Of a DNA stretch of 64,000 bases, positions 2,908 to 32,237 are shown one piece after another. Position 1 is the first letter of the stretch, and each line of letters starts with the position of its first letter. Location of the stretch: positions 62,001-126,000 of the IMG/VR virus record IMGVR_UViG_3300046517_002304; one strand, given 5' to 3'. The position numbers and the translations under genes were made by a program. Below the pieces are notes generated by a model. It did no database searches. It was not told the origin of the DNA and saw only the letters and a list, made by a program, of their open reading frames with translations.

Positions 2908-3219
2908 ATGATTCCGTTTAAGTTATTTATAAAAGAGTCTATCTCGGCCCGATTACACGCGGATCAAAAGACATCTGCTAATAAGGAATTAGATCATTTA
3001 TCATCAAAGTTATGGCCTAAAATCCCCTTCCTTATGATAGCCGAAATTTTGGGAAAGTATGAAATATCATTTGATCCTAGAAATATTACTAGGTCATTAG
3101 ATGGAGAAGTTGATTTAGACATACTGTATTCAGGACTTCCAGTTGTTAATTCAAAGTTGGTAATTGTATGGTATCATATGGGGCAAGGTTCATTTAAAAT
3201 TAGATCTTACTTGAAGTGA
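2908..3219 (+). CDS. Putative internal head protein, paralogue of 9174..9491
   Basis: MIPFKLFIKE N-terminus; TATATA-N4-ATG; shares W..IP...I..IL and LY.G.PV.NS.L...WY.M..G with 9174..9491. Confidence 0.7.
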   Translation: MIPFKLFIKESISARLHADQKTSANKELDHLSSKLWPKIPFLMIAEILGKYEISFDPRNITRSLDGEVDLDILYSGLPVVNSKLVIVWYHMGQGSFKIRSYLK

Positions 3220-3234
3220 AAAATAATTTTTGAA

Positions 3235-3396
3235 TTAGCCGTAATAATCTGGATATTGTTTTTTTAGTTCAGCATAGCGATCTGCTTCACGCTTCATCCA
3301 TTCGGGCCATGCTTCTACTTCCTTTTTGACTAAGTCCATTTGTTCTTTAAGCCATCCTGGTTTTAGTCCTTCGTTGTACTTTATTTCACTTCGCAT
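3235..3396 (-). CDS. Small hypothetical protein (53 aa, MRSEIKYNEGLKPGWLKEQM...)
   Basis: Hand-translated; start overlaps the stop of the upstream minus-strand ORF. Confidence 0.55.
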   Translation of the reverse strand: MRSEIKYNEGLKPGWLKEQMDLVKKEVEAWPEWMKREADRYAELKKQYPDYYG

Positions 3397-3637
3397 TCTT
3401 CAAGTCCTCAAAAATTACATCTTCGTAATAAATTCTATGCTCTTGCATGGTAGCATTTTTTAAAGTATGCTTTGCTATAGCCTTACGTTTATTGTCGTAA
3501 TCAATTACCTCTATATTTTTCATTCCCTTCCATAGATTAAGGTCATTGACGGTGACTGGAAGCCAATTTTTATACTTGTCTAGTTCGGGTAAATCAGCAA
3601 CCACAGATTCTACTCCATTTATTTTTATAATCAGCAT
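3386..3637 (-). CDS. Hypothetical protein
   Basis: 83 aa ORF starting 3 nt after the gp46 stop. Confidence 0.55.
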   Translation of the reverse strand: MLIIKINGVESVVADLPELDKYKNWLPVTVNDLNLWKGMKNIEVIDYDNKRKAIAKHTLKNATMQEHRIYYEDVIFEDLKNAK

Positions 3638-3640
3638 ATT

Positions 3641-5599
3641 CTATTCCTCTAATGTACTAAAGCCATCTTTCTTAGCAATAGTTATGGTTTCACAATTTTC
3701 TAATAAATCTAATAAGACTTGGTCGTGAGTGACGACAATTACCTGTCTTTCCGTGGCCAGTTCGCATATTAGCCTATACACTCCCTCAATGCCGTCTTTA
3801 TCAAAGAACGCCCCAACCTCATCTAGCATAACAATACTAGGCGAAGTTCCAGAAGATATTGACATAATATAGCTGAATGCTTGCGATATACTTAGGTCAA
3901 TCCTCTTTTTTTCTCCCCCCGACGTAGCGTTATAAGCAAATGCATCGCCGTCTGGTGGGCACCGTTCAATAACTTCATTTAGGTTATTATCAAATACAAC
4001 TTTTAACTTATCATTAATTAAAAAGTGCAGATAATATGCAATCTTATTATTAAGAGTTGGGATAATATCATCTAGAAGAACCTTTCTAATTCCATCTTCA
4101 CTAAATCCGTCTATCCAGAAATTATAGTAAGTTAACTCTTTGGTCGCGTCATCTATGTTCTGACTAATACCCGCTAGCTTTTTCTGACATTCGCTTAGTT
4201 CATTTCCTATAGTCTTAATAATTGACTTATACGGATTCCCGCCATTTAGCTCATGCTTGATAGAAAAAACTTTATCCTCTAGTGATGATATTTGTTCTTG
4301 GATTAAACGATTTTGATGACTTGTATCAGGCTTTTCTATTGAAATCAATTCTTTGATTCTTTGTTTAATAAGTAAAATTTTACCTTCTGTTGCCTTAACT
4401 TTATTCTTTATTTCTACCTGCATCGCCAATGCTTTTTGAGTATTATTTTTTGCGCCTTGGAACGTTGCTTGGCTTCCAGATAGAGCTATGCCGAGTGAGT
4501 CATTTTCATTTTCTAAGTCTTTTATGCCTTCTTTTTTATGGTTTAGAACCTTTTCGTAATTTTCTTTAGCCACAGTGCCAAAGCATATAGAGCAAGTGGC
4601 CCCTACTTGAAGGTTTTCTAACATATAAGCGTCTTTATTAATCTTTGCAATTTCTTTTCTGTTTCGCTCAATAGATGCTTCAATGGTTTTTACATGATTA
4701 TTGATGTCATTTTCTTTGCCTCTCATAATTTCTAATTTGTCATAAATTGCATTTATAGCAGTTAAACATTTTTCCTTACTGGCTTCGGCATCGGAAAGTA
4801 ATTGGCTATATTCCTTGATTTTTATTTGAGCGTTTTCGTATAACAGAATCTGATTTCCATCATCTGTTTGTAATATCTGCTGCTTCTTATTATCTAATAG
4901 CTTTTCTAATTCACTTAATTCTTGTGTTTTTTTGGTATTCCATATTGATTCTTGGTTAGTAAGTTGAGTTAACTTGTTCTGGTACGACTTTTCATTACCG
5001 AGTAGGTTTTCATAATGAATGCGCTGCTCTTTGATTGATGTGCTTACATTTTTGTATTCTTCCTTACTGATTTCGTAAAATTTATTATACTTGTCCAAAG
5101 CAAGGATGTTTTCTACAATTTTTCTTTTAGTGCTAGGTGGAGCAGAAAGAAAGTCATAGTTATTGTGCTGCCCAAAGCAAGCGATATTAACAAATGCATT
5201 ATAGCTTAATTTTATAATGTTCTCTAAGAGTTCTTGCGTAGCAGGAATACCGCCTAGAGTAAGCTCCTTGTCTTCTTTCCACAGCCTAAGAATATCGGGC
5301 TTTCTAGTTCTTAGAATTTTATAATCATCAAAACACAGTTCAACTTCTAATCCCTTTTTGTTTTTTTTGTTGATTATATCTGAATGAGATAGATTGCGAA
5401 TAGTTTTGCCGTATAAGGCGTAAACGATAGCCTCAAAGATACCGGATTTACACGAACCATTGCTGGTAGGCTCATCTTTGTCTACATCGTAATTTTTACC
5501 CTTTAGCAAGATAATATTACCGTGTTTAGTGAAGTCAACGAAAACAGGCTCTTCTCCGATAGAGAAGAAATTCTTAGCTTTAATAGATTTGATATGCAT
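3641..5599 (-). CDS. gp46: SbcC/Rad50-type recombination endonuclease ATPase subunit (T4 gp46-like)
   Basis: IKSIKAKNFFSIG start, Walker A variant NGSCKS, Q-loop FGQ, coiled coil with CSIC zinc hook, signature SGGEKKR, Walker B MLDE, H-loop VTHD. Confidence 0.95.
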   Translation of the reverse strand: MHIKSIKAKNFFSIGEEPVFVDFTKHGNIILLKGKNYDVDKDEPTSNGSCKSGIFEAIVYALYGKTIRNLSHSDIINKKNKKGLEVELCFDDYKILRTRKPDILRLWKEDKELTLGGIPATQELLENIIKLSYNAFVNIACFGQHNNYDFLSAPPSTKRKIVENILALDKYNKFYEISKEEYKNVSTSIKEQRIHYENLLGNEKSYQNKLTQLTNQESIWNTKKTQELSELEKLLDNKKQQILQTDDGNQILLYENAQIKIKEYSQLLSDAEASKEKCLTAINAIYDKLEIMRGKENDINNHVKTIEASIERNRKEIAKINKDAYMLENLQVGATCSICFGTVAKENYEKVLNHKKEGIKDLENENDSLGIALSGSQATFQGAKNNTQKALAMQVEIKNKVKATEGKILLIKQRIKELISIEKPDTSHQNRLIQEQISSLEDKVFSIKHELNGGNPYKSIIKTIGNELSECQKKLAGISQNIDDATKELTYYNFWIDGFSEDGIRKVLLDDIIPTLNNKIAYYLHFLINDKLKVVFDNNLNEVIERCPPDGDAFAYNATSGGEKKRIDLSISQAFSYIMSISSGTSPSIVMLDEVGAFFDKDGIEGVYRLICELATERQVIVVTHDQVLLDLLENCETITIAKKDGFSTLEE

Positions 5600-25740: not shown

Positions 25741-26400
25741 ATGACGCTACCCTTTGAGAATGATAGTAAAAGAAAATATACTTGCTTCTGTTGTGGTGTG
25801 GCATTTAACTTTAATGAGTTCGCTGATTATAAAGAACACATTATAAGTGAGCATGAAGAAGGCCGAGAATGGATTAAATGCCCTCTGGCACGGTGCGGAG
25901 CACCGGTAAGAGATATTCGTTCGCACTTTAAAATTTGTCATCCTGCTGATAAAATACCACATGATATGCAAATGAAAGTTATGGTATGGCGCGATTTTGG
26001 CAGCAAGAAGAGAAAGAAAATGCAGTTTGAGGAGGGATATTTAATATCGATCAAGAATCATGGGGCTGCAATGCATTACCGATCATCTTATGAAAAAAAG
26101 ATATATGAATGCCTAGAACAGTTGCCCAGAGTTGTATCTTATCAAGTAGAGCCATTTTATGTCGGCTATTTTTTTGGCTCTAAGAACAGGAAGTATTATC
26201 CAGACATACAAGTAAATTTTGCAGATAATTCCACAGAGATATGGGAGGTTAAGCCTAGTAAGCAAACCAGCTCAAAGCAAAACAGGGCGAAATGGGAAGC
26301 CTGCGAAGCCTATTGCTTGGTGAAGGGATGGAAGTTTGTTGTAAAAACAGAAAAAGGTATCGCAAACCTATTAATTGAAGTTGCGGATAATCAGGCGTAA
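25741..26400 (+). CDS. gp4: Head completion nuclease (T4 gp4/TnsA-like) with two N-terminal C2H2-type fingers
   Basis: YRSSYEKK...YYPDIQV...EVKP...AKWEA; N-terminal CxxC...HxxxxH twice. Confidence 0.8.
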   Translation: MTLPFENDSKRKYTCFCCGVAFNFNEFADYKEHIISEHEEGREWIKCPLARCGAPVRDIRSHFKICHPADKIPHDMQMKVMVWRDFGSKKRKKMQFEEGYLISIKNHGAAMHYRSSYEKKIYECLEQLPRVVSYQVEPFYVGYFFGSKNRKYYPDIQVNFADNSTEIWEVKPSKQTSSKQNRAKWEACEAYCLVKGWKFVVKTEKGIANLLIEVADNQA

Positions 26401-27362
26401 TCCCAAAGCTTTAGATCATCTATGAAGTATGGAGACCTAATGACTAGTTCATCTGTTGTTAAGTTTTCACATTCTATAGCGTCTTTGAATTTTTTAACTT
26501 TGTCGGATAGAACAATGCTAAATTGTTTTTTGCCATGTGATTTAGTAATTTTGCCATCTTTAATTACTTCCTGAAACCATTTTGTAGATTCTTCTGTCTT
26601 TGTTAGAAATAATCCGTTATATTCTGTATCTGGTTCATTAATTAAATATGCATCTTTCATTGCTTTGACGTACTTAACCGAATAGCCAAGTATCTTAGCC
26701 GCTGCGGTTATATTAAATTTTGTTGCTTCTAGGACGGTCAGTATATCCTTGCGACATAGATCAAATTTGCCTATTCCATTTATCAATTTATTAAACGTTT
26801 TAATAAATTTTCCTTTAGTACCGTTATTGACAATAACGTATTCAAATTGACTTCGCTTTAAGTTTGTTTCGCTGTCGTGGTTATAATAGATATCAAAATC
26901 CGGCCGTATTACGAATAAACACATGGCTCCTAGCTCTTTAAGCGTTTCATGTTCATTGACAAATCTAGCATCATCACACGTCCATAAGTCTTTATCATTA
27001 ATTTGTTTGGCAAATTCCTTGACATGAAAATTATTATCGTATTTACGGAGTATTTCGGTGCCTATAATTTGCATGGCATCTCTGATACTATTAAACGTTT
27101 TATCTTCATGATAAAGGGATTTTGTTGCTTTGACCATTTTAGCTAATTTATCTGCCGTTACCTTGTTCCATATTAACGGTTGAGCTAACTTCTGTTCCTT
27201 TTTCACTACATCTGTTAAATCCTTAGGATTTAGCTTATAGAGTTCACTGACTAAGGATTTTAGTTTATCGGCGAAACTAATTTTTTTATAGCCGAGTGGG
27301 ACTAACTGGTCTGCGAGGGTTGTTTTGCCAGCTTTGCATCTGGCAGATATGGAGATAATCAT
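26391..27362 (-). CDS. Deoxynucleoside monophosphate kinase with C-terminal HTH extension
   Basis: AGKTT P-loop, SFADKLK, RDAMQIIGTEILR, DDARFVNE; then VLEATKFNITAAAKILG. Confidence 0.85.
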   Translation of the reverse strand: MIISISARCKAGKTTLADQLVPLGYKKISFADKLKSLVSELYKLNPKDLTDVVKKEQKLAQPLIWNKVTADKLAKMVKATKSLYHEDKTFNSIRDAMQIIGTEILRKYDNNFHVKEFAKQINDKDLWTCDDARFVNEHETLKELGAMCLFVIRPDFDIYYNHDSETNLKRSQFEYVIVNNGTKGKFIKTFNKLINGIGKFDLCRKDILTVLEATKFNITAAAKILGYSVKYVKAMKDAYLINEPDTEYNGLFLTKTEESTKWFQEVIKDGKITKSHGKKQFSIVLSDKVKKFKDAIECENLTTDELVIRSPYFIDDLKLWDYA

Positions 27363-27393
27363 GATAATATAATCGTCATTACTATTATAGCAC

Positions 27394-27588
27394 ATGAAAC
27401 AAATTTGCGGAAATTGCCCTCTGTACAACAAAAAAGAAAAGACCTGCGAGGTGAGTGTAGTGCATAGAGGAGTGGTTTTAGAACTTATGTGCGAAGCGGC
27501 AGATGAATGCTACTGGATTAAAAATGACATTGCAATTAGTCAGATAAAAGTAGATTATGACGGGAATAAGCGAATTATTGCAGATTAG
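27394..27588 (+). CDS. Small Cys-rich hypothetical protein
   Basis: CGNCPLY...C...C...C. Confidence 0.55.
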   Translation: MKQICGNCPLYNKKEKTCEVSVVHRGVVLELMCEAADECYWIKNDIAISQIKVDYDGNKRIIAD

Positions 27589-28328
27589 ACGAAAATCTCT
27601 AGTGGTCCACGCTTGCTTTTTTGAGTAGTATCACCAAAAACCATAGTAAAACTTACATCATAAATGCCGCAATCCATTTCAGTTGTGTCCAATAAGTAAT
27701 ATCCTGTATTTCTATCTTTGAATGTCATAGCTGCGCTGTCAACTACAGTTCTTAAGTCTTCTTCTCTTGGAATACATTTTCCGCATCTTTGTACAATTGT
27801 AATCGTTATATCTGATACGATTGCCAAATTTTCGTAATACTGCTCTAATATGGTGCCTTTTGGGACATTTGGCTTAATTTCTACTGTAACATACTTAACT
27901 GAGCCTTTAGTAATTCTATTAGGCGAAAACCTGAAGTCAAAATCATAGACAAGAGGTTTGTCGGCAACCACCCATAAATTTGGATAAACAGTAAAGTTGT
28001 TTTCTATGGTAGCAGGACAATTACTAGTGTCATCGTAAATAACGCTCCATTGATCAATGTAATCACCGATAACGAATTGTGGTGTGGTGATGGCCAAAGG
28101 GATAGAGTATTTTCCTGTGTCGTCAAGAGATATGGTATTAACGTCTAAAGATGCGAATAGTGTGCGTCCATCCGGATTAATATCCGAAATAGCGGTTGGG
28201 TCTAAGTAGTAAACCTTTACCGCTTCAATTGACTTAAGATTAGTATATTGGTTTGAGTTGAAAACAAAAATTCTTAATTCAACTGTGTCGCCGATTACCA
28301 GATTTTGATTACGCTCTTTTGTAGCCAT
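27585..28328 (-). CDS. Probable virion structural protein (two beta-sandwich-like halves)
   Basis: TAAATA-N4-ATG; beta-rich with GKY/GDY/GYY/GIY motifs. Confidence 0.55.
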   Translation of the reverse strand: MATKERNQNLVIGDTVELRIFVFNSNQYTNLKSIEAVKVYYLDPTAISDINPDGRTLFASLDVNTISLDDTGKYSIPLAITTPQFVIGDYIDQWSVIYDDTSNCPATIENNFTVYPNLWVVADKPLVYDFDFRFSPNRITKGSVKYVTVEIKPNVPKGTILEQYYENLAIVSDITITIVQRCGKCIPREEDLRTVVDSAAMTFKDRNTGYYLLDTTEMDCGIYDVSFTMVFGDTTQKSKRGPLEIFV

Positions 28329-28344
28329 ACCATATTTACTATGG

Positions 28345-28500
28345 TTACTTCTTATTCATGGCTGCGATTTTCTTTTCTTCTTGGTCAATGAATTTCTTGA
28401 TTAGATATTTTCTCTTATAAATCGGCAAAAACATCATTTCGCTCGGCTGTATATGTAAATTAGAGGAGAAGAATAGCATTTCATCAAGAAGCTCATACAT
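28345..28500 (-). CDS. Baseplate hub/tail assembly small subunit (gp51-like, 51 aa)
   Basis: Not in the track. MYELLDEMLFFSSNLHIQPSEMMFLPIYKRKYLIKKFIDQEEKK, immediately after the gp26-like gene and in its -1 frame. Confidence 0.7.
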   Translation of the reverse strand: MYELLDEMLFFSSNLHIQPSEMMFLPIYKRKYLIKKFIDQEEKKIAAMNKK

Positions 28501-28505
28501 CAAGC

Positions 28506-29570
28506 TTATGCTAGCGGAGTCATCTTCTTCCCCTTTGGGAAGAAAAAACTTAAATCCAATGGCAAATCAGATTCAAAATCTGATGTACATAATGGGCATT
28601 GAACTTTAACCTTAGTATTAACTCCAAATGGGGGGGTGAACACTAAATCTCTAATGAAATTAAAATCATTAGCGGGCAGATTTTTGATTAATGTATGAAT
28701 ACTAACCTGATCATTTATACCTTCAATATCTTGGATGTACAATGATAGCTTGAATGTCACTGTATCGGTTCCCGCAGCATTCCCGAATCCTTGCATTTTG
28801 CGGCTTTTATAGCTAGCAATAGATAGTTCATCTGAAATTCTAGGAAAACGATATGTAAATTTATATCCAGTTACTGGCAGAACTTCATTTAAAGACGCGG
28901 CAGTAAAATTATCTGGACACATTGTAAGCTGAACGTCTTGATCAAGGTCAATAGTTGTTGGAAATTTTTCACTACAAACGGCACAGGTCATTTCTGCATC
29001 CCAGTCCACGCCTAAAGAAATACCGCGTAAGAATATCATCAAGTAATAACGATCTTCCTGTAGGAAATTATCTGTGTTATACTTTTCTCTAAGACATCTT
29101 GTGAAAATCTCTGATAAGGCTGATCCTTTTCGTGCGATTCTTGGATTTGCTAGAATGTCTTCTTCGTCACCGGTCATAGAGCGAATGTTTAGAACGCCAT
29201 CGGTCGGACCATCTGTCCCATTATAAAATCGCCCTAGAGACGGCAGTGTAATTTTTTCGTATTTATGTGTATATTTTTGAGCACCAGCCAGTAGTTCTTG
29301 AAGCTTAGTTGTTCCTACCATTCCGGCCATTTGCGGACTGATTCCAGCTTGTGCAGCCTGCTCTACACTTAGTCCAGAAGTTGGCTGTGGCTGGCCTTGA
29401 TTAGCCATGTCCATTAGTTCACGAACCTGAGGGGGAATATTTCCCGACATTTTTGGCATGCCCCCAGCATGACTGTCTACTGATGAAAGTGACTTTTGAA
29501 AATTCTGTATAGCCTCAAAGTTAGGCACGCTACTTGATGGGATTTGTGGTTTAAATGTTTCGATAGGCAT
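28506..29570 (-). CDS. Baseplate hub subunit / tail assembly chaperone (gp26-like)
   Basis: ITLPSLG...IRSMTGDEEDIL...DRYYLMIFLRGIS..CAVC...CPLC...LPLDLSFFFP; long Pro/Gln-rich N-terminus. Confidence 0.8.
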   Translation of the reverse strand: MPIETFKPQIPSSSVPNFEAIQNFQKSLSSVDSHAGGMPKMSGNIPPQVRELMDMANQGQPQPTSGLSVEQAAQAGISPQMAGMVGTTKLQELLAGAQKYTHKYEKITLPSLGRFYNGTDGPTDGVLNIRSMTGDEEDILANPRIARKGSALSEIFTRCLREKYNTDNFLQEDRYYLMIFLRGISLGVDWDAEMTCAVCSEKFPTTIDLDQDVQLTMCPDNFTAASLNEVLPVTGYKFTYRFPRISDELSIASYKSRKMQGFGNAAGTDTVTFKLSLYIQDIEGINDQVSIHTLIKNLPANDFNFIRDLVFTPPFGVNTKVKVQCPLCTSDFESDLPLDLSFFFPKGKKMTPLA

Positions 29571-31598: not shown

Positions 31599-32237
31599 AT
31601 GAGTACCGGAATGGGCCTTGGCCCTGTATTAAATCGAAATGATATAGAATTAAAGCGACAATTTCGCTGGATGCTTGAAGTTGGACAAGGTGGCAATGAC
31701 TCGGGCGGAATTGGCGGCATTGTAGGCAACGCAGTGAATGTTCTTCCTCCACTGGCATCTGAAAGACCATCTTTAAGTTTTAAAGAAATTGAGATTGAGC
31801 ATACTTCTGAAACTATCTTCATGCCTACTAAGGCTCAGTGGAAGCCATTAAAAGTTAAGGTATATGATGTAGCTACCAATCTAAAGAACAATATGGTCTT
31901 TGATTGGGTCGTTAGATTTTATAATGCTCAAAAAGCATCCTACAACTTTGTTTCTGCTCAGTTTGCGCAAAATTTTAAGAAGACAGTTAATCTTAGCCTA
32001 TACAGTGGACAAGGGTGTTGCCTTGAAAGTTGGCAGTTAGATGGCGCATGGCCTCGTGAAATTAACTTTGGCGAGTTAAATATGGAAAGCTCAGCAATTG
32101 TTACGATTGACATGGAGCTAAGATTTGATAGAGCATACGTCACAACGTTTAATGAAAATGGACAATATGTATCTGCTGGTAAGGGGTGCCTAGATTATAG
32201 AACCGGCGCTAATTGCCAGAATGGGTTTACTCAGTAG
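31599..32237 (+). CDS. Second tail-tube-like protein (gp19 family)
   Basis: KRQFRWML, RPSLSF, GAWPREINFGELNMESS..VTIDMELRFDRA; CTAAATA-N4-ATG. Confidence 0.85.
   Translation: MSTGMGLGPVLNRNDIELKRQFRWMLEVGQGGNDSGGIGGIVGNAVNVLPPLASERPSLSFKEIEIEHTSETIFMPTKAQWKPLKVKVYDVATNLKNNMVFDWVVRFYNAQKASYNFVSAQFAQNFKKTVNLSLYSGQGCCLESWQLDGAWPREINFGELNMESSAIVTIDMELRFDRAYVTTFNENGQYVSAGKGCLDYRTGANCQNGFTQ

Follow-up and report, generated by a model that had tools for sequence, protein, structure and literature searches.

Our data indicate that a 511-kb soil phage probably produces a short and a long tail-hub assembly chaperone from a single gene by a programmed -1 ribosomal frameshift at a TTTTTTC site, although this rests on comparative evidence in the absence of RNA or protein data for the locus. 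The site is conserved in about 140 related huge phages and marine cyanophages, where the two parts are annotated as separate genes. The locus lies on the minus strand of a 64,000-nucleotide stretch of the phage genome, referred to here as the window, and its features are collected in the table below. The 354-aa zero-frame ORF belongs to Pfam PF12322, the T4 gp26/gp51 hub-assembly chaperone family, and the -1 frame is open through its 3' end into a 51-aa ORF. We found no paper describing this arrangement.

Coordinates of the recoding locus and related features within the window
Feature	Coordinates	Strand	Description
Zero-frame ORF (short form)	28506..29570	-	354 aa; gp26-like architecture (PF12322 domain only); residues 1-100 predicted disordered and hypervariable; ends with the invariant FFFP motif, a 10-aa basic tail and TAA
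Last upstream stop of the -1 frame	28569..28567	-	TGA; the -1 frame is open from 28566
First heptamer	28542..28548	-	T_TTT_TTC (U_UUU_UUC); in phase with the zero frame; proposed -1 shift site
T6 run	28548..28543	-	Homopolymer within the first heptamer
Second heptamer	28533..28539	-	C_CCA_AAG; in phase; lineage-specific; possible auxiliary slip site
Third heptamer	28530..28536	-	A_AAG_GGG; in phase; lineage-specific
Zero-frame stop	28506..28508	-	TAA; closes the 36-nt interval (28542..28509) within which a shift must occur
-1-frame extension	28345..28542	-	65 aa (LPKGEEDD...NKK) plus a stop at 28347..28345; acidic linker followed by a predicted Gp51_C-like three-helix domain
Long form	complement(join(28345..28542,28542..29570))	-	343 + 65 = 408 aa
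51-aa ORF	28345..28500	-	ATG at 28500, TTG at 28503; the Met sits at the position of the family's conserved Trp, so conserved residues (ASISL, matching PSLxL) lie upstream of it
Tube gene	31599..32237	other strand	About 2 kb from the zero-frame ORF

We first confirmed the arrangement directly from the sequence. The zero-frame ORF ends ...DLSFFFPKGKKMTPLA, its last codons are AGT TTT TTC TTC CCA AAG GGG AAG AAG, and all three heptamers are therefore in phase as X_XXY_YYZ. The -1 frame reads ...FFLPKGEEDDSASISLMYELLDE... through the ATG of the 51-aa ORF to its stop, and no Shine-Dalgarno-like sequence is present in the roughly 15 nt before this ATG. A shift at T_TTT_TTC would yield a junction peptide of ...SFFLPKGEEDDSASISL.... 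TTTTTTC alone is common in this AT-rich window (49 copies against about 31 expected), and the heptamer on its own is therefore not remarkable. What exceeds chance is its conservation at synonymous sites in about 140 independent relatives.

We next questioned whether the heptamer is conserved beyond what the encoded protein requires. In 76 distinct related metagenome loci (37-47% protein identity, gene GC 33-58%) the codons NNT TTT TTC are invariant and the site reads NNT TTT TTC TTC CCN, with one TTT at the third Phe. The wobble base before the Phe run is always T (AAT never AAC; GGT, AGT, GAT), while elsewhere in the same genes Phe is 610 TTT / 395 TTC (61% TTT) and Asn is 917 AAT / 487 AAC (65% AAT), and the flanking invariant L, P, L, P codons use all synonymous codons. 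The FFFP/FFLP amino acids are conserved in both frames, which accounts for part, though not all, of the nucleotide conservation; the wobble T before the run is not explained by either protein. In contrast, the second heptamer is absent from the closest phage record, which has C_CCA_CGC, and from most of the 76 loci, and the third is likewise not conserved. Both are peculiar to this phage and a few relatives.

The extension lies in the -1 frame and is open for 68-83 codons wherever the contig reaches that far, while the +1 frame is short and variable. The zero-frame stop in relatives lies 21-63 nt after the heptamer, embedded in the -1-frame codons for S-[L/I]. None of 120 called homologues carries the extension in frame; all stop 6-18 aa after FFFP, as do all of the 229 homologues identified. 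We found that 34/76 loci have no ATG between the heptamer and the conserved EExFFF motif, that 17/76 have no ATG/GTG/TTG anywhere before this motif, and that 46/76 have no ATG/GTG/TTG upstream of the conserved LW. In many loci the -1 frame has a stop one or two codons before the heptamer. The conserved peptide can therefore only be reached by shifting between the heptamer and the zero-frame stop. Codon-position entropy of the extension was 0.81/0.42/1.35, and an alignment of 54 sequences contains invariant or near-invariant S13, L20, E22, E23, F25-27, Y29, H30, R46 and Q56, indicating purifying selection. Frame-by-frame amino-acid identity in the overlap (0.52 against 0.48) was not discriminating because the zero frame ends inside the block.

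The zero-frame protein matches PF12322 with 53.4 bits against a cut-off of 24.5 (residues 122-333 to profile positions 14-208/219) and phrog_150 'baseplate hub' at 1.7e-17. A scan of the complete 511-kb genome found only one significant PF12322 gene (54.1 bits). The AF2 model of the zero-frame protein has a pLDDT of 83.8, and a fold search of the PF12322 domain against PDB gave no match. The AF2 model of the extension has a pLDDT of 87.5, with predicted helices at 11-30, 35-38 and 43-66. Neither the 51-aa ORF nor the 73-aa -1 segment had a Pfam or PHROG hit on its own, and a word search with the 67-aa extension gave no candidates, which is uninformative since the sequence is too divergent for shared 5-mers. 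In the ESM Atlas, however, 27/30 of the nearest clusters to the extension carry PF28602 Gp51_C, the C-terminal domain of T4 gp51 (score 0.94, 194/256 shared features).

T4-like cyanophages show the same design. Prochlorococcus phage P-HM1 gp26 ends GAT TTT TTC GTA TAG, and its small 'gp51' is in the -1 frame, which opens exactly at the heptamer (gene pair PHM1_017/018); the corresponding P-HM1 junction peptide would be ...GLSDFFRIALFHEGIMTFYQ.... About 65 of 70 distinct related contigs have NNT TTT TTC/A, and some lack the Met. The cyanophage linker is only about 9 codons and the zero-frame tail only one residue, and protein identity to the window is low and detectable only profile-to-profile. 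These are annotated as two genes, and we found no paper proposing a frameshift for them. The conceptual P-HM1 fusion aligns with T4 gp51 in one HSP across the junction, including the linker (E 4e-7), while T4 gp26 aligns only up to the FF motif. Huge-phage long forms align with cyanophage long forms through the junction (hhalign Prob 96.2, E 2.2e-9; extension alone E 2.7e-4). Direct comparison of the extension with Tevenvirinae gp51 tails, by hhalign, hmmsearch and a gp51-tail HMM searched against 8641 ORF pieces, was not significant, such that the link to T4 gp51 runs through the cyanophage intermediates and the language-model search.

These data suggest that most ribosomes read the zero frame and make a protein with the architecture of T4 gp26, while a fraction slip back one base with tRNA-Phe on UUU in the P site and tRNA-Phe on UUC in the A site, both re-pairing with UUU, and continue into the extension. 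The long product would have the architecture of T4 gp51. T4 gp26 and gp51 are baseplate hub assembly chaperones (Leiman et al. 2010, PMC3004832, Table 2); gp26 is PF12322 only, while gp51 is PF12322 plus a 48-aa tail, and its homologues are labelled PF12322+PF28602. T4 encodes the two forms as two divergently transcribed paralogous genes with no slippery run (gp26 ends GAG TTC TTT GAG) and also makes an internal-start product, gp26'. The phage studied here has one gene, probably with recoding, and its protein has an extra predicted disordered N-terminal region of about 100 aa. By inference from T4 genetics, both forms may act as non-structural chaperones in assembling the baseplate hub and tape-measure complex, with the slip rate setting their ratio.

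The preliminary description proposed that a -1 frameshift at three adjacent slippery heptamers fuses the gp26-like and gp51-like ORFs, giving a short and a long chaperone in a fixed ratio, and noted that lambda G/GT-type chaperones use -1 frameshifting. Our data support the core of this reading with four corrections. Only T_TTT_TTC is conserved. The likeness to lambda G/GT is one of organisation and inferred logic rather than detected homology. The fixed ratio and chaperone role are inferred. Independent initiation at the ATG of the 51-aa ORF, which the preliminary description did not exclude, remains possible as an additional route in this phage but cannot explain the family-wide pattern.

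Lambda gpG/gpGT, and the conserved -1 frameshift of tail assembly chaperone genes in long-tailed phages (Xu, Hendrix and Duda 2004; also P2 E/E+E'), appear to share with this locus two overlapping ORFs joined by a slippery X_XXY_YYZ heptamer, no obvious stimulatory structure, short and long proteins with a common N-terminal part, and a downstream ORF that often has no start of its own. Both lambda products probably act in tail morphogenesis. No Pfam TAC family was hit by the gene studied here, and a fold search of the extension against BFVD gave only weak hits, the best to an annotated tail assembly chaperone (E 0.037). In this phage and in cyanophages the gene is not next to a tape-measure gene; in the window its flanks are a divergent 121-aa ORF and a 247-aa ORF. 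In the distant PF12322 relatives SP-15, LIS04 and HSE3, however, the gene pair sits exactly between the tail tube and tape-measure genes.

We also asked whether a stimulatory element accompanies the heptamer. RNAalifold on 76 downstream regions gave an empty consensus, the mean per-sequence z-scores were 0.06 / -0.51, a scan of Rfam gave nothing, and no upstream SD-like stimulator was found. A 10-bp hairpin in the window includes the slip site itself and is not significant (z -0.81). Such an element is not obligatory, and lambda G/GT probably has none.

An alternative, which we consider unlikely but do not exclude, is transcriptional slippage, in which the RNA polymerase adds one extra U on the T6 run and a subset of mRNAs encodes the identical 408-aa fusion. 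Consistent with this, the conserved element is a homopolymer held at exactly six T in about 140 loci, the next base being C or A and never T, and no ribosomal stimulator was found. Furthermore, Ralstonia phage RsoM2USA has a T9 run at the same place with an extension-like ORF in the -1 frame, and Bacillus phage SP-15 and Listeria phage LIS04 keep a T6 run although the extension lies in the +1 frame, which a one-U deletion would reach. However, six U is probably short for efficient slippage by bacterial or phage RNA polymerases, for which runs of about 8-9 or more appear to be typical, and the run is always in the canonical X_XXY_YYZ phase. Distant relatives whose extension is in the +1 frame (HSE3, GXN1: TTC TTT CGT; LR756508: AAC TTT CTA) have no homopolymer at all, so polymerase slippage cannot be the family-wide mechanism.

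Less likely still is that two separate proteins are made without recoding, the 51-aa protein by initiation or termination-reinitiation at its ATG five bases after the TAA, with the heptamer conserved only because FFFP is an essential protein motif. The window does have an ATG and a TTG just after the stop, the nearest phage record has a TAATG stop-start overlap, about 42/76 loci and most cyanophages have a Met near the start of the domain, GenBank annotates cyanophage gp26 and gp51 as separate genes, and overlapping stop-start coupling also tends to give a -1 relation. Against this reading stand the missing Shine-Dalgarno sequence, the loci without start codons, the invariant wobble T and the colinearity of T4 gp51 with the fusion. 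In addition, several cyanophages replace the Met (LARFY), and stop-to-ATG spacing varies from overlap to tens of bases, yet the frame is always -1. A homopolymer sequencing or assembly error, or a recent frameshift mutation splitting one gp51-like gene, is for practical purposes refuted, although the break lies at a classic site of indel errors, since the same T6 and frame relation occur in an identical IMG/VR contig, in contigs of two other soil/rhizosphere runs without difference or indel, and in 76 + ~65 independent divergent assemblies, and both frames downstream show purifying selection.

A broader hypothesis, which we regard as about equally likely to be right or wrong, is that recoding at the C-terminal Phe-Phe motif is an ancient, general property of the PF12322 hub/tape-measure chaperone family of contractile-tailed phages. 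It would take the -1 form (T_TTT_TTC) in huge phages and T4-like cyanophages and a +1 form (TTT-C/A) in SP-15-, HSE3- and GXN1-like phages, and would have been replaced by gene duplication (26 and 51) in T4 itself. The roles of gp26 and gp51, core T4-like genes, in hub assembly have stayed obscure for decades. If the two are the short and long products of one ancestral recoded gene, T4's hub chaperones would be the functional counterpart of lambda G/GT and fall under its logic of ratio-controlled tail assembly, and a frameshift and a gene duplication would be alternative solutions to the same stoichiometry problem. The small 'gp51' core gene of marine cyanophages would then be a trans-frame extension rather than a free-standing gene, and the annotation of the core gene pair would need correcting in hundreds of cyanophage and huge-phage genomes. 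An alternative genetic code is not needed to account for the locus, as all ORFs are long under table 11 and the stop in question is TAA.

We first examined the 3' end of the minus-strand ORF of 354 aa, whose last codons are AGT TTT TTC TTC CCA AAG GGG AAG AAG ATG ACT CCG CTA GCA TAA. Three X_XXY_YYZ heptamers (T_TTT_TTC, C_CCA_AAG, and A_AAG_GGG) are therefore in phase. Downstream of a TGA the -1 frame is open through FFLPKGEEDDSASISL and the ATG at 28500, which is not preceded by a Shine-Dalgarno-like sequence, down to its own stop. The preliminary description, which had noted these three heptamers and the open -1 frame, is accurate, although taken alone the observation is not beyond chance because TTTTTTC occurs 49 times in this AT-rich window against 30.9 expected (no shuffle reached 49). 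The coordinates of the features considered here are collected in the table below.

Coordinates of the features in the window and in related phages (L-numbers are our labels for the sequences named beside them)
Sequence	Coordinates	Strand	Feature
Window	28506..29570	-	Zero-frame ORF, 354 aa
Window	29270-29570	-	Residues 1-100 of the 354-aa protein
Window	28587-28985	-	Cys196, Cys199, Cys325, and Cys328 of the 354-aa protein
Window	28569..28567	-	TGA in the -1 frame
Window	28548..28542	-	T_TTT_TTC
Window	28539..28533	-	C_CCA_AAG
Window	28536..28530	-	A_AAG_GGG
Window	28509-28541	-	Overlap of the zero-frame tail and the -1 frame
Window	28500	-	ATG of the small ORF
Window	28347..28345	-	Stop of the -1 frame
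Window	complement(join(28345..28542,28542..29570))	-	Proposed trans-frame protein, 408 aa
Window	27585-28328	-	247-aa ORF directly downstream of the pair
Window	26391-27431	-	346-aa protein with a deoxynucleotide monophosphate kinase domain
L001 (uncultured 595-kb phage)	3855-4601		ORF of 248 aa, syntenic with the 247-aa ORF
L002 (Bacillus phage SP-15)	2680-2960		Extension in the +1 frame; Phe-Phe site GAA TTT TTT CAC
L003 (Listeria phage LIS04)	2640-2945		Extension in the +1 frame; Phe-Phe site GAG TTT TTT AGT
L087 (Bacillus phage vB_BceM-HSE3)	3176-3450		Extension in the +1 frame; Phe-Phe site GAG TTC TTT CGT
L088 (Streptococcus phage GXN1)	3155-3480		Extension in the +1 frame; Phe-Phe site GAA TTC TTT CGT
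L089 (uncultured 484-kb phage LR756508)	3173-3450		Extension in the +1 frame; Phe-Phe site AAC TTT CTA
L086 (Ralstonia phage RsoM2USA, RsoM2USA_375)	3163-3500		PF12322 homologue ending in a T9 run; extension-like peptide in the -1 frame
L097 (Prochlorococcus phage P-HM1)	2178-3058		End of gp26 with the small 'gp51' in the -1 frame

We next asked what the two ORFs encode. The 354-aa protein matches Pfam PF12322 (T4_baseplate) at 53.4 bits against a cut-off of 24.5, and it also matches phrog_150 'baseplate hub'. PF12322 is the family of T4 gp26 and gp51, which are listed as 'hub assembly chaperones' in a review of the T4 tail (PMC3004832). The PF12322 part is predicted to fold well (pLDDT 83.8) and has no solved relative. 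The N-terminal region of about 100 residues is predicted to be disordered (pLDDT 46-72), is hypervariable in length and sequence among homologues, and has no counterpart in T4 gp26/gp51 or in the cyanophage proteins. Two CxxC pairs form a likely zinc ribbon in this protein and in T4 gp26/gp51, but many huge-phage homologues have lost them (for example CPFT..DKKF and SPFTLEDF), and the metal site is therefore not essential to the family. The small ORF has no Pfam or PHROG hit in the local libraries. However, 27 of its 30 nearest clusters in the ESM Atlas are small viral proteins carrying PF28602 'Gp51_C' (score 0.94, 194/256 features). T4 gp51 homologues are labelled PF12322+PF28602, while T4 gp26 is PF12322 from end to end. 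The window lies in a complete 511,233-bp phage genome with direct terminal repeats, from soil and rhizosphere metagenomes, which contains only one significant PF12322 gene. Tail tube and sheath genes are nearby. The 247-aa ORF directly downstream of the pair is syntenic in the 595-kb phage and in other huge-phage contigs (241-245 aa; L090 and L092). It has no family match, so it may be a further tail or hub assembly component.

We then questioned whether this arrangement is conserved in other huge phages. The nearest phage record, an uncultured 595-kb phage at 39% identity, has the same two ORFs in the same -1 relation. The 14 nucleotides GTTTTTTCTTCCCA are identical in this record, but the second and third heptamers are not conserved there. 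A word search found 229 homologues, all of which end in FFFP plus a short basic tail, and a metagenome scan supplied 80 loci with their DNA, which together with the phage record make 76 distinct sequences. In every case the codons are NNT TTT TTC TTC CCN, with a single TTT at the third Phe, and the preceding codon always ends in T (AAT 64 times and never AAC; also GGT, AGT, and GAT). These genes span 33-58% GC, and elsewhere in them Phe is encoded by 610 TTT and 395 TTC and Asn by 917 AAT and 487 AAC, while the invariant Leu, Pro, Leu, and Pro codons around the site use all synonymous codons. The -1 frame is open for 68-83 codons in every locus that reaches that far, whereas the +1 frame is short and erratic, and in many loci the -1 frame carries a stop one or two codons before the heptamer.

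The extension in the -1 frame encodes a conserved domain with the consensus FFLPxxxEEGxDPSLxLWxxLxEExFFFxYHLxxxxxxxMxLPINERKWxIxRFIxQKEKENEAME, and its codon-position entropy is typical of coding sequence (0.81/0.42/1.35). We found that 34/76 loci have no ATG between the heptamer and the EExFFF motif, 17/76 have no ATG, GTG, or TTG there, and 46/76 have no possible start upstream of the conserved LW. In the window, the Met at 28500 occupies the position of the conserved Trp, and the upstream ASISL matches the conserved PSLxL. None of the 120 called homologues carries the extension in frame. The conserved domain can thus be reached only by ribosomes that change frame between the heptamer and the zero-frame stop (RNA-polymerase slippage, considered below, cannot be excluded), and the only invariant slippery motif in that interval is T_TTT_TTC. 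In the overlap of the window and the homologous overlap in the loci labelled L005-L084, the recurrent zero-frame tail ...K-T-Q-A-stop appears to be a by-product of the conserved -1-frame D-P-S-[L/I], with the stop TAG/TAA formed inside the Leu/Ile codon plus the next G. The basic zero-frame tail (RRKK) and the acidic -1 linker (EEG) are two readings of the same purine-rich run.

To link the pair to T4, we turned to the T4-like cyanophages. In Prochlorococcus phage P-HM1, gp26 ends TCT GAT TTT TTC GTA TAG, and the annotated 53-aa 'gp51' lies in the -1 frame, which opens exactly at the heptamer. Among 70 distinct related viral contigs, about 65 show NNT TTT TTC or NNT TTT TTA followed by G-N-N and a stop. 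The -1 peptide FFRIALFxEG... is conserved upstream of the annotated Met, and several contigs lack that Met (LARFY). The 'gp51' core gene of cyanomyoviruses may be mis-annotated as free-standing. The conceptual P-HM1 -1 fusion aligns with T4 gp51 in a single HSP that runs through the junction without a gap there (residues 183-281 against 147-249, E 4e-7), while T4 gp26 aligns only up to the FF motif. Furthermore, a profile of the huge-phage long forms aligns by hhalign with a profile of the cyanophage long forms in one stretch through the junction to the end of the extension (Prob 96.2, E 2.2e-9; extension alone E 2.7e-4). The short product therefore has the architecture of gp26 and the trans-frame product that of gp51. 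T4 itself encodes the two as separate, divergently transcribed genes with no slippery run.

In the absence of transcript or protein evidence, the best explanation of these data is a canonical tandem -1 slip of two tRNA-Phe on U_UUU_UUC, which would yield a 408-aa protein alongside the 354-aa protein. The extension is confidently predicted as three helices after an acidic linker (pLDDT 87.5). We found no conserved stimulatory structure or Rfam element, which also appears to be true of lambda G/GT and suggests a low-efficiency shift. C_CCA_AAG and A_AAG_GGG could add to the flux in this phage, where they would give ...FFFPKGEEDD... rather than ...FFLPKGEEDD..., but they are not conserved. RNA-polymerase slippage on the T6 run would give the same protein and cannot be excluded, although six T is probably short for that and relatives without any run argue against it as a general mechanism. 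Independent initiation or reinitiation at the ATG at 28500 may occur in addition, but it cannot account for the family-wide pattern. Assembly error is excluded by identical contigs from other samples and by the comparative data.

The function of the pair is inferred from T4 genetics, which make gp26 and gp51 hub-assembly chaperones (PMC3004832). In Bacillus phages SP-15 and vB_BceM-HSE3 and Listeria phage LIS04, the PF12322 gene lies between the tail tube and tape-measure genes, the classical slot of the G/GT-type chaperones, and is followed by an extension domain that our extension HMM recognises (E 3e-9 to 1.5e-6). The extension's best hit among predicted viral structures is an annotated tail assembly chaperone, but only at E 0.037. 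In this phage the gene is not adjacent to a tape-measure gene. The likeness to G/GT is therefore one of organisation and inferred logic, and homology to gpG/gpT is not supported. Programmed frameshifting is already known in tail assembly chaperone genes; what differs here is that it would operate in a T4-core family without supported homology to gpG/gpT. We found no paper proposing recoding in this family, although our literature search was incomplete and a prior description elsewhere cannot be excluded, and comparative papers treat cyanophage gp26 and gp51 as two core genes.

In SP-15, LIS04, vB_BceM-HSE3, Streptococcus phage GXN1, and LR756508, the homologous extension domain lies in the +1 frame, not the -1 frame, and is open back across the hub stop and the Phe-Phe codons (TTT TTT C/A, or TTC TTT CGT CCC, or AAC TTT CTA). 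The annotated small ORFs (SP15_046 and HSE3_gp075) begin well inside the conserved domain. This suggests a +1 recoding variant of the same system. In Ralstonia phage RsoM2USA, the PF12322 homologue ends GTT TTT TTT TCC GAG TAA, and the -1 frame then reads an extension-like peptide (...ALEISFYSKG...SAAERELAVEFLTKKRE...) that is not annotated and that did not reach significance with our extension HMM. Elsewhere in the window, a 346-aa protein combines a deoxynucleotide monophosphate kinase domain (PF21448, phrog_139) with a weak C-terminal Fis-type helix-turn-helix match, which is an unusual fusion for a phage dNMP kinase.
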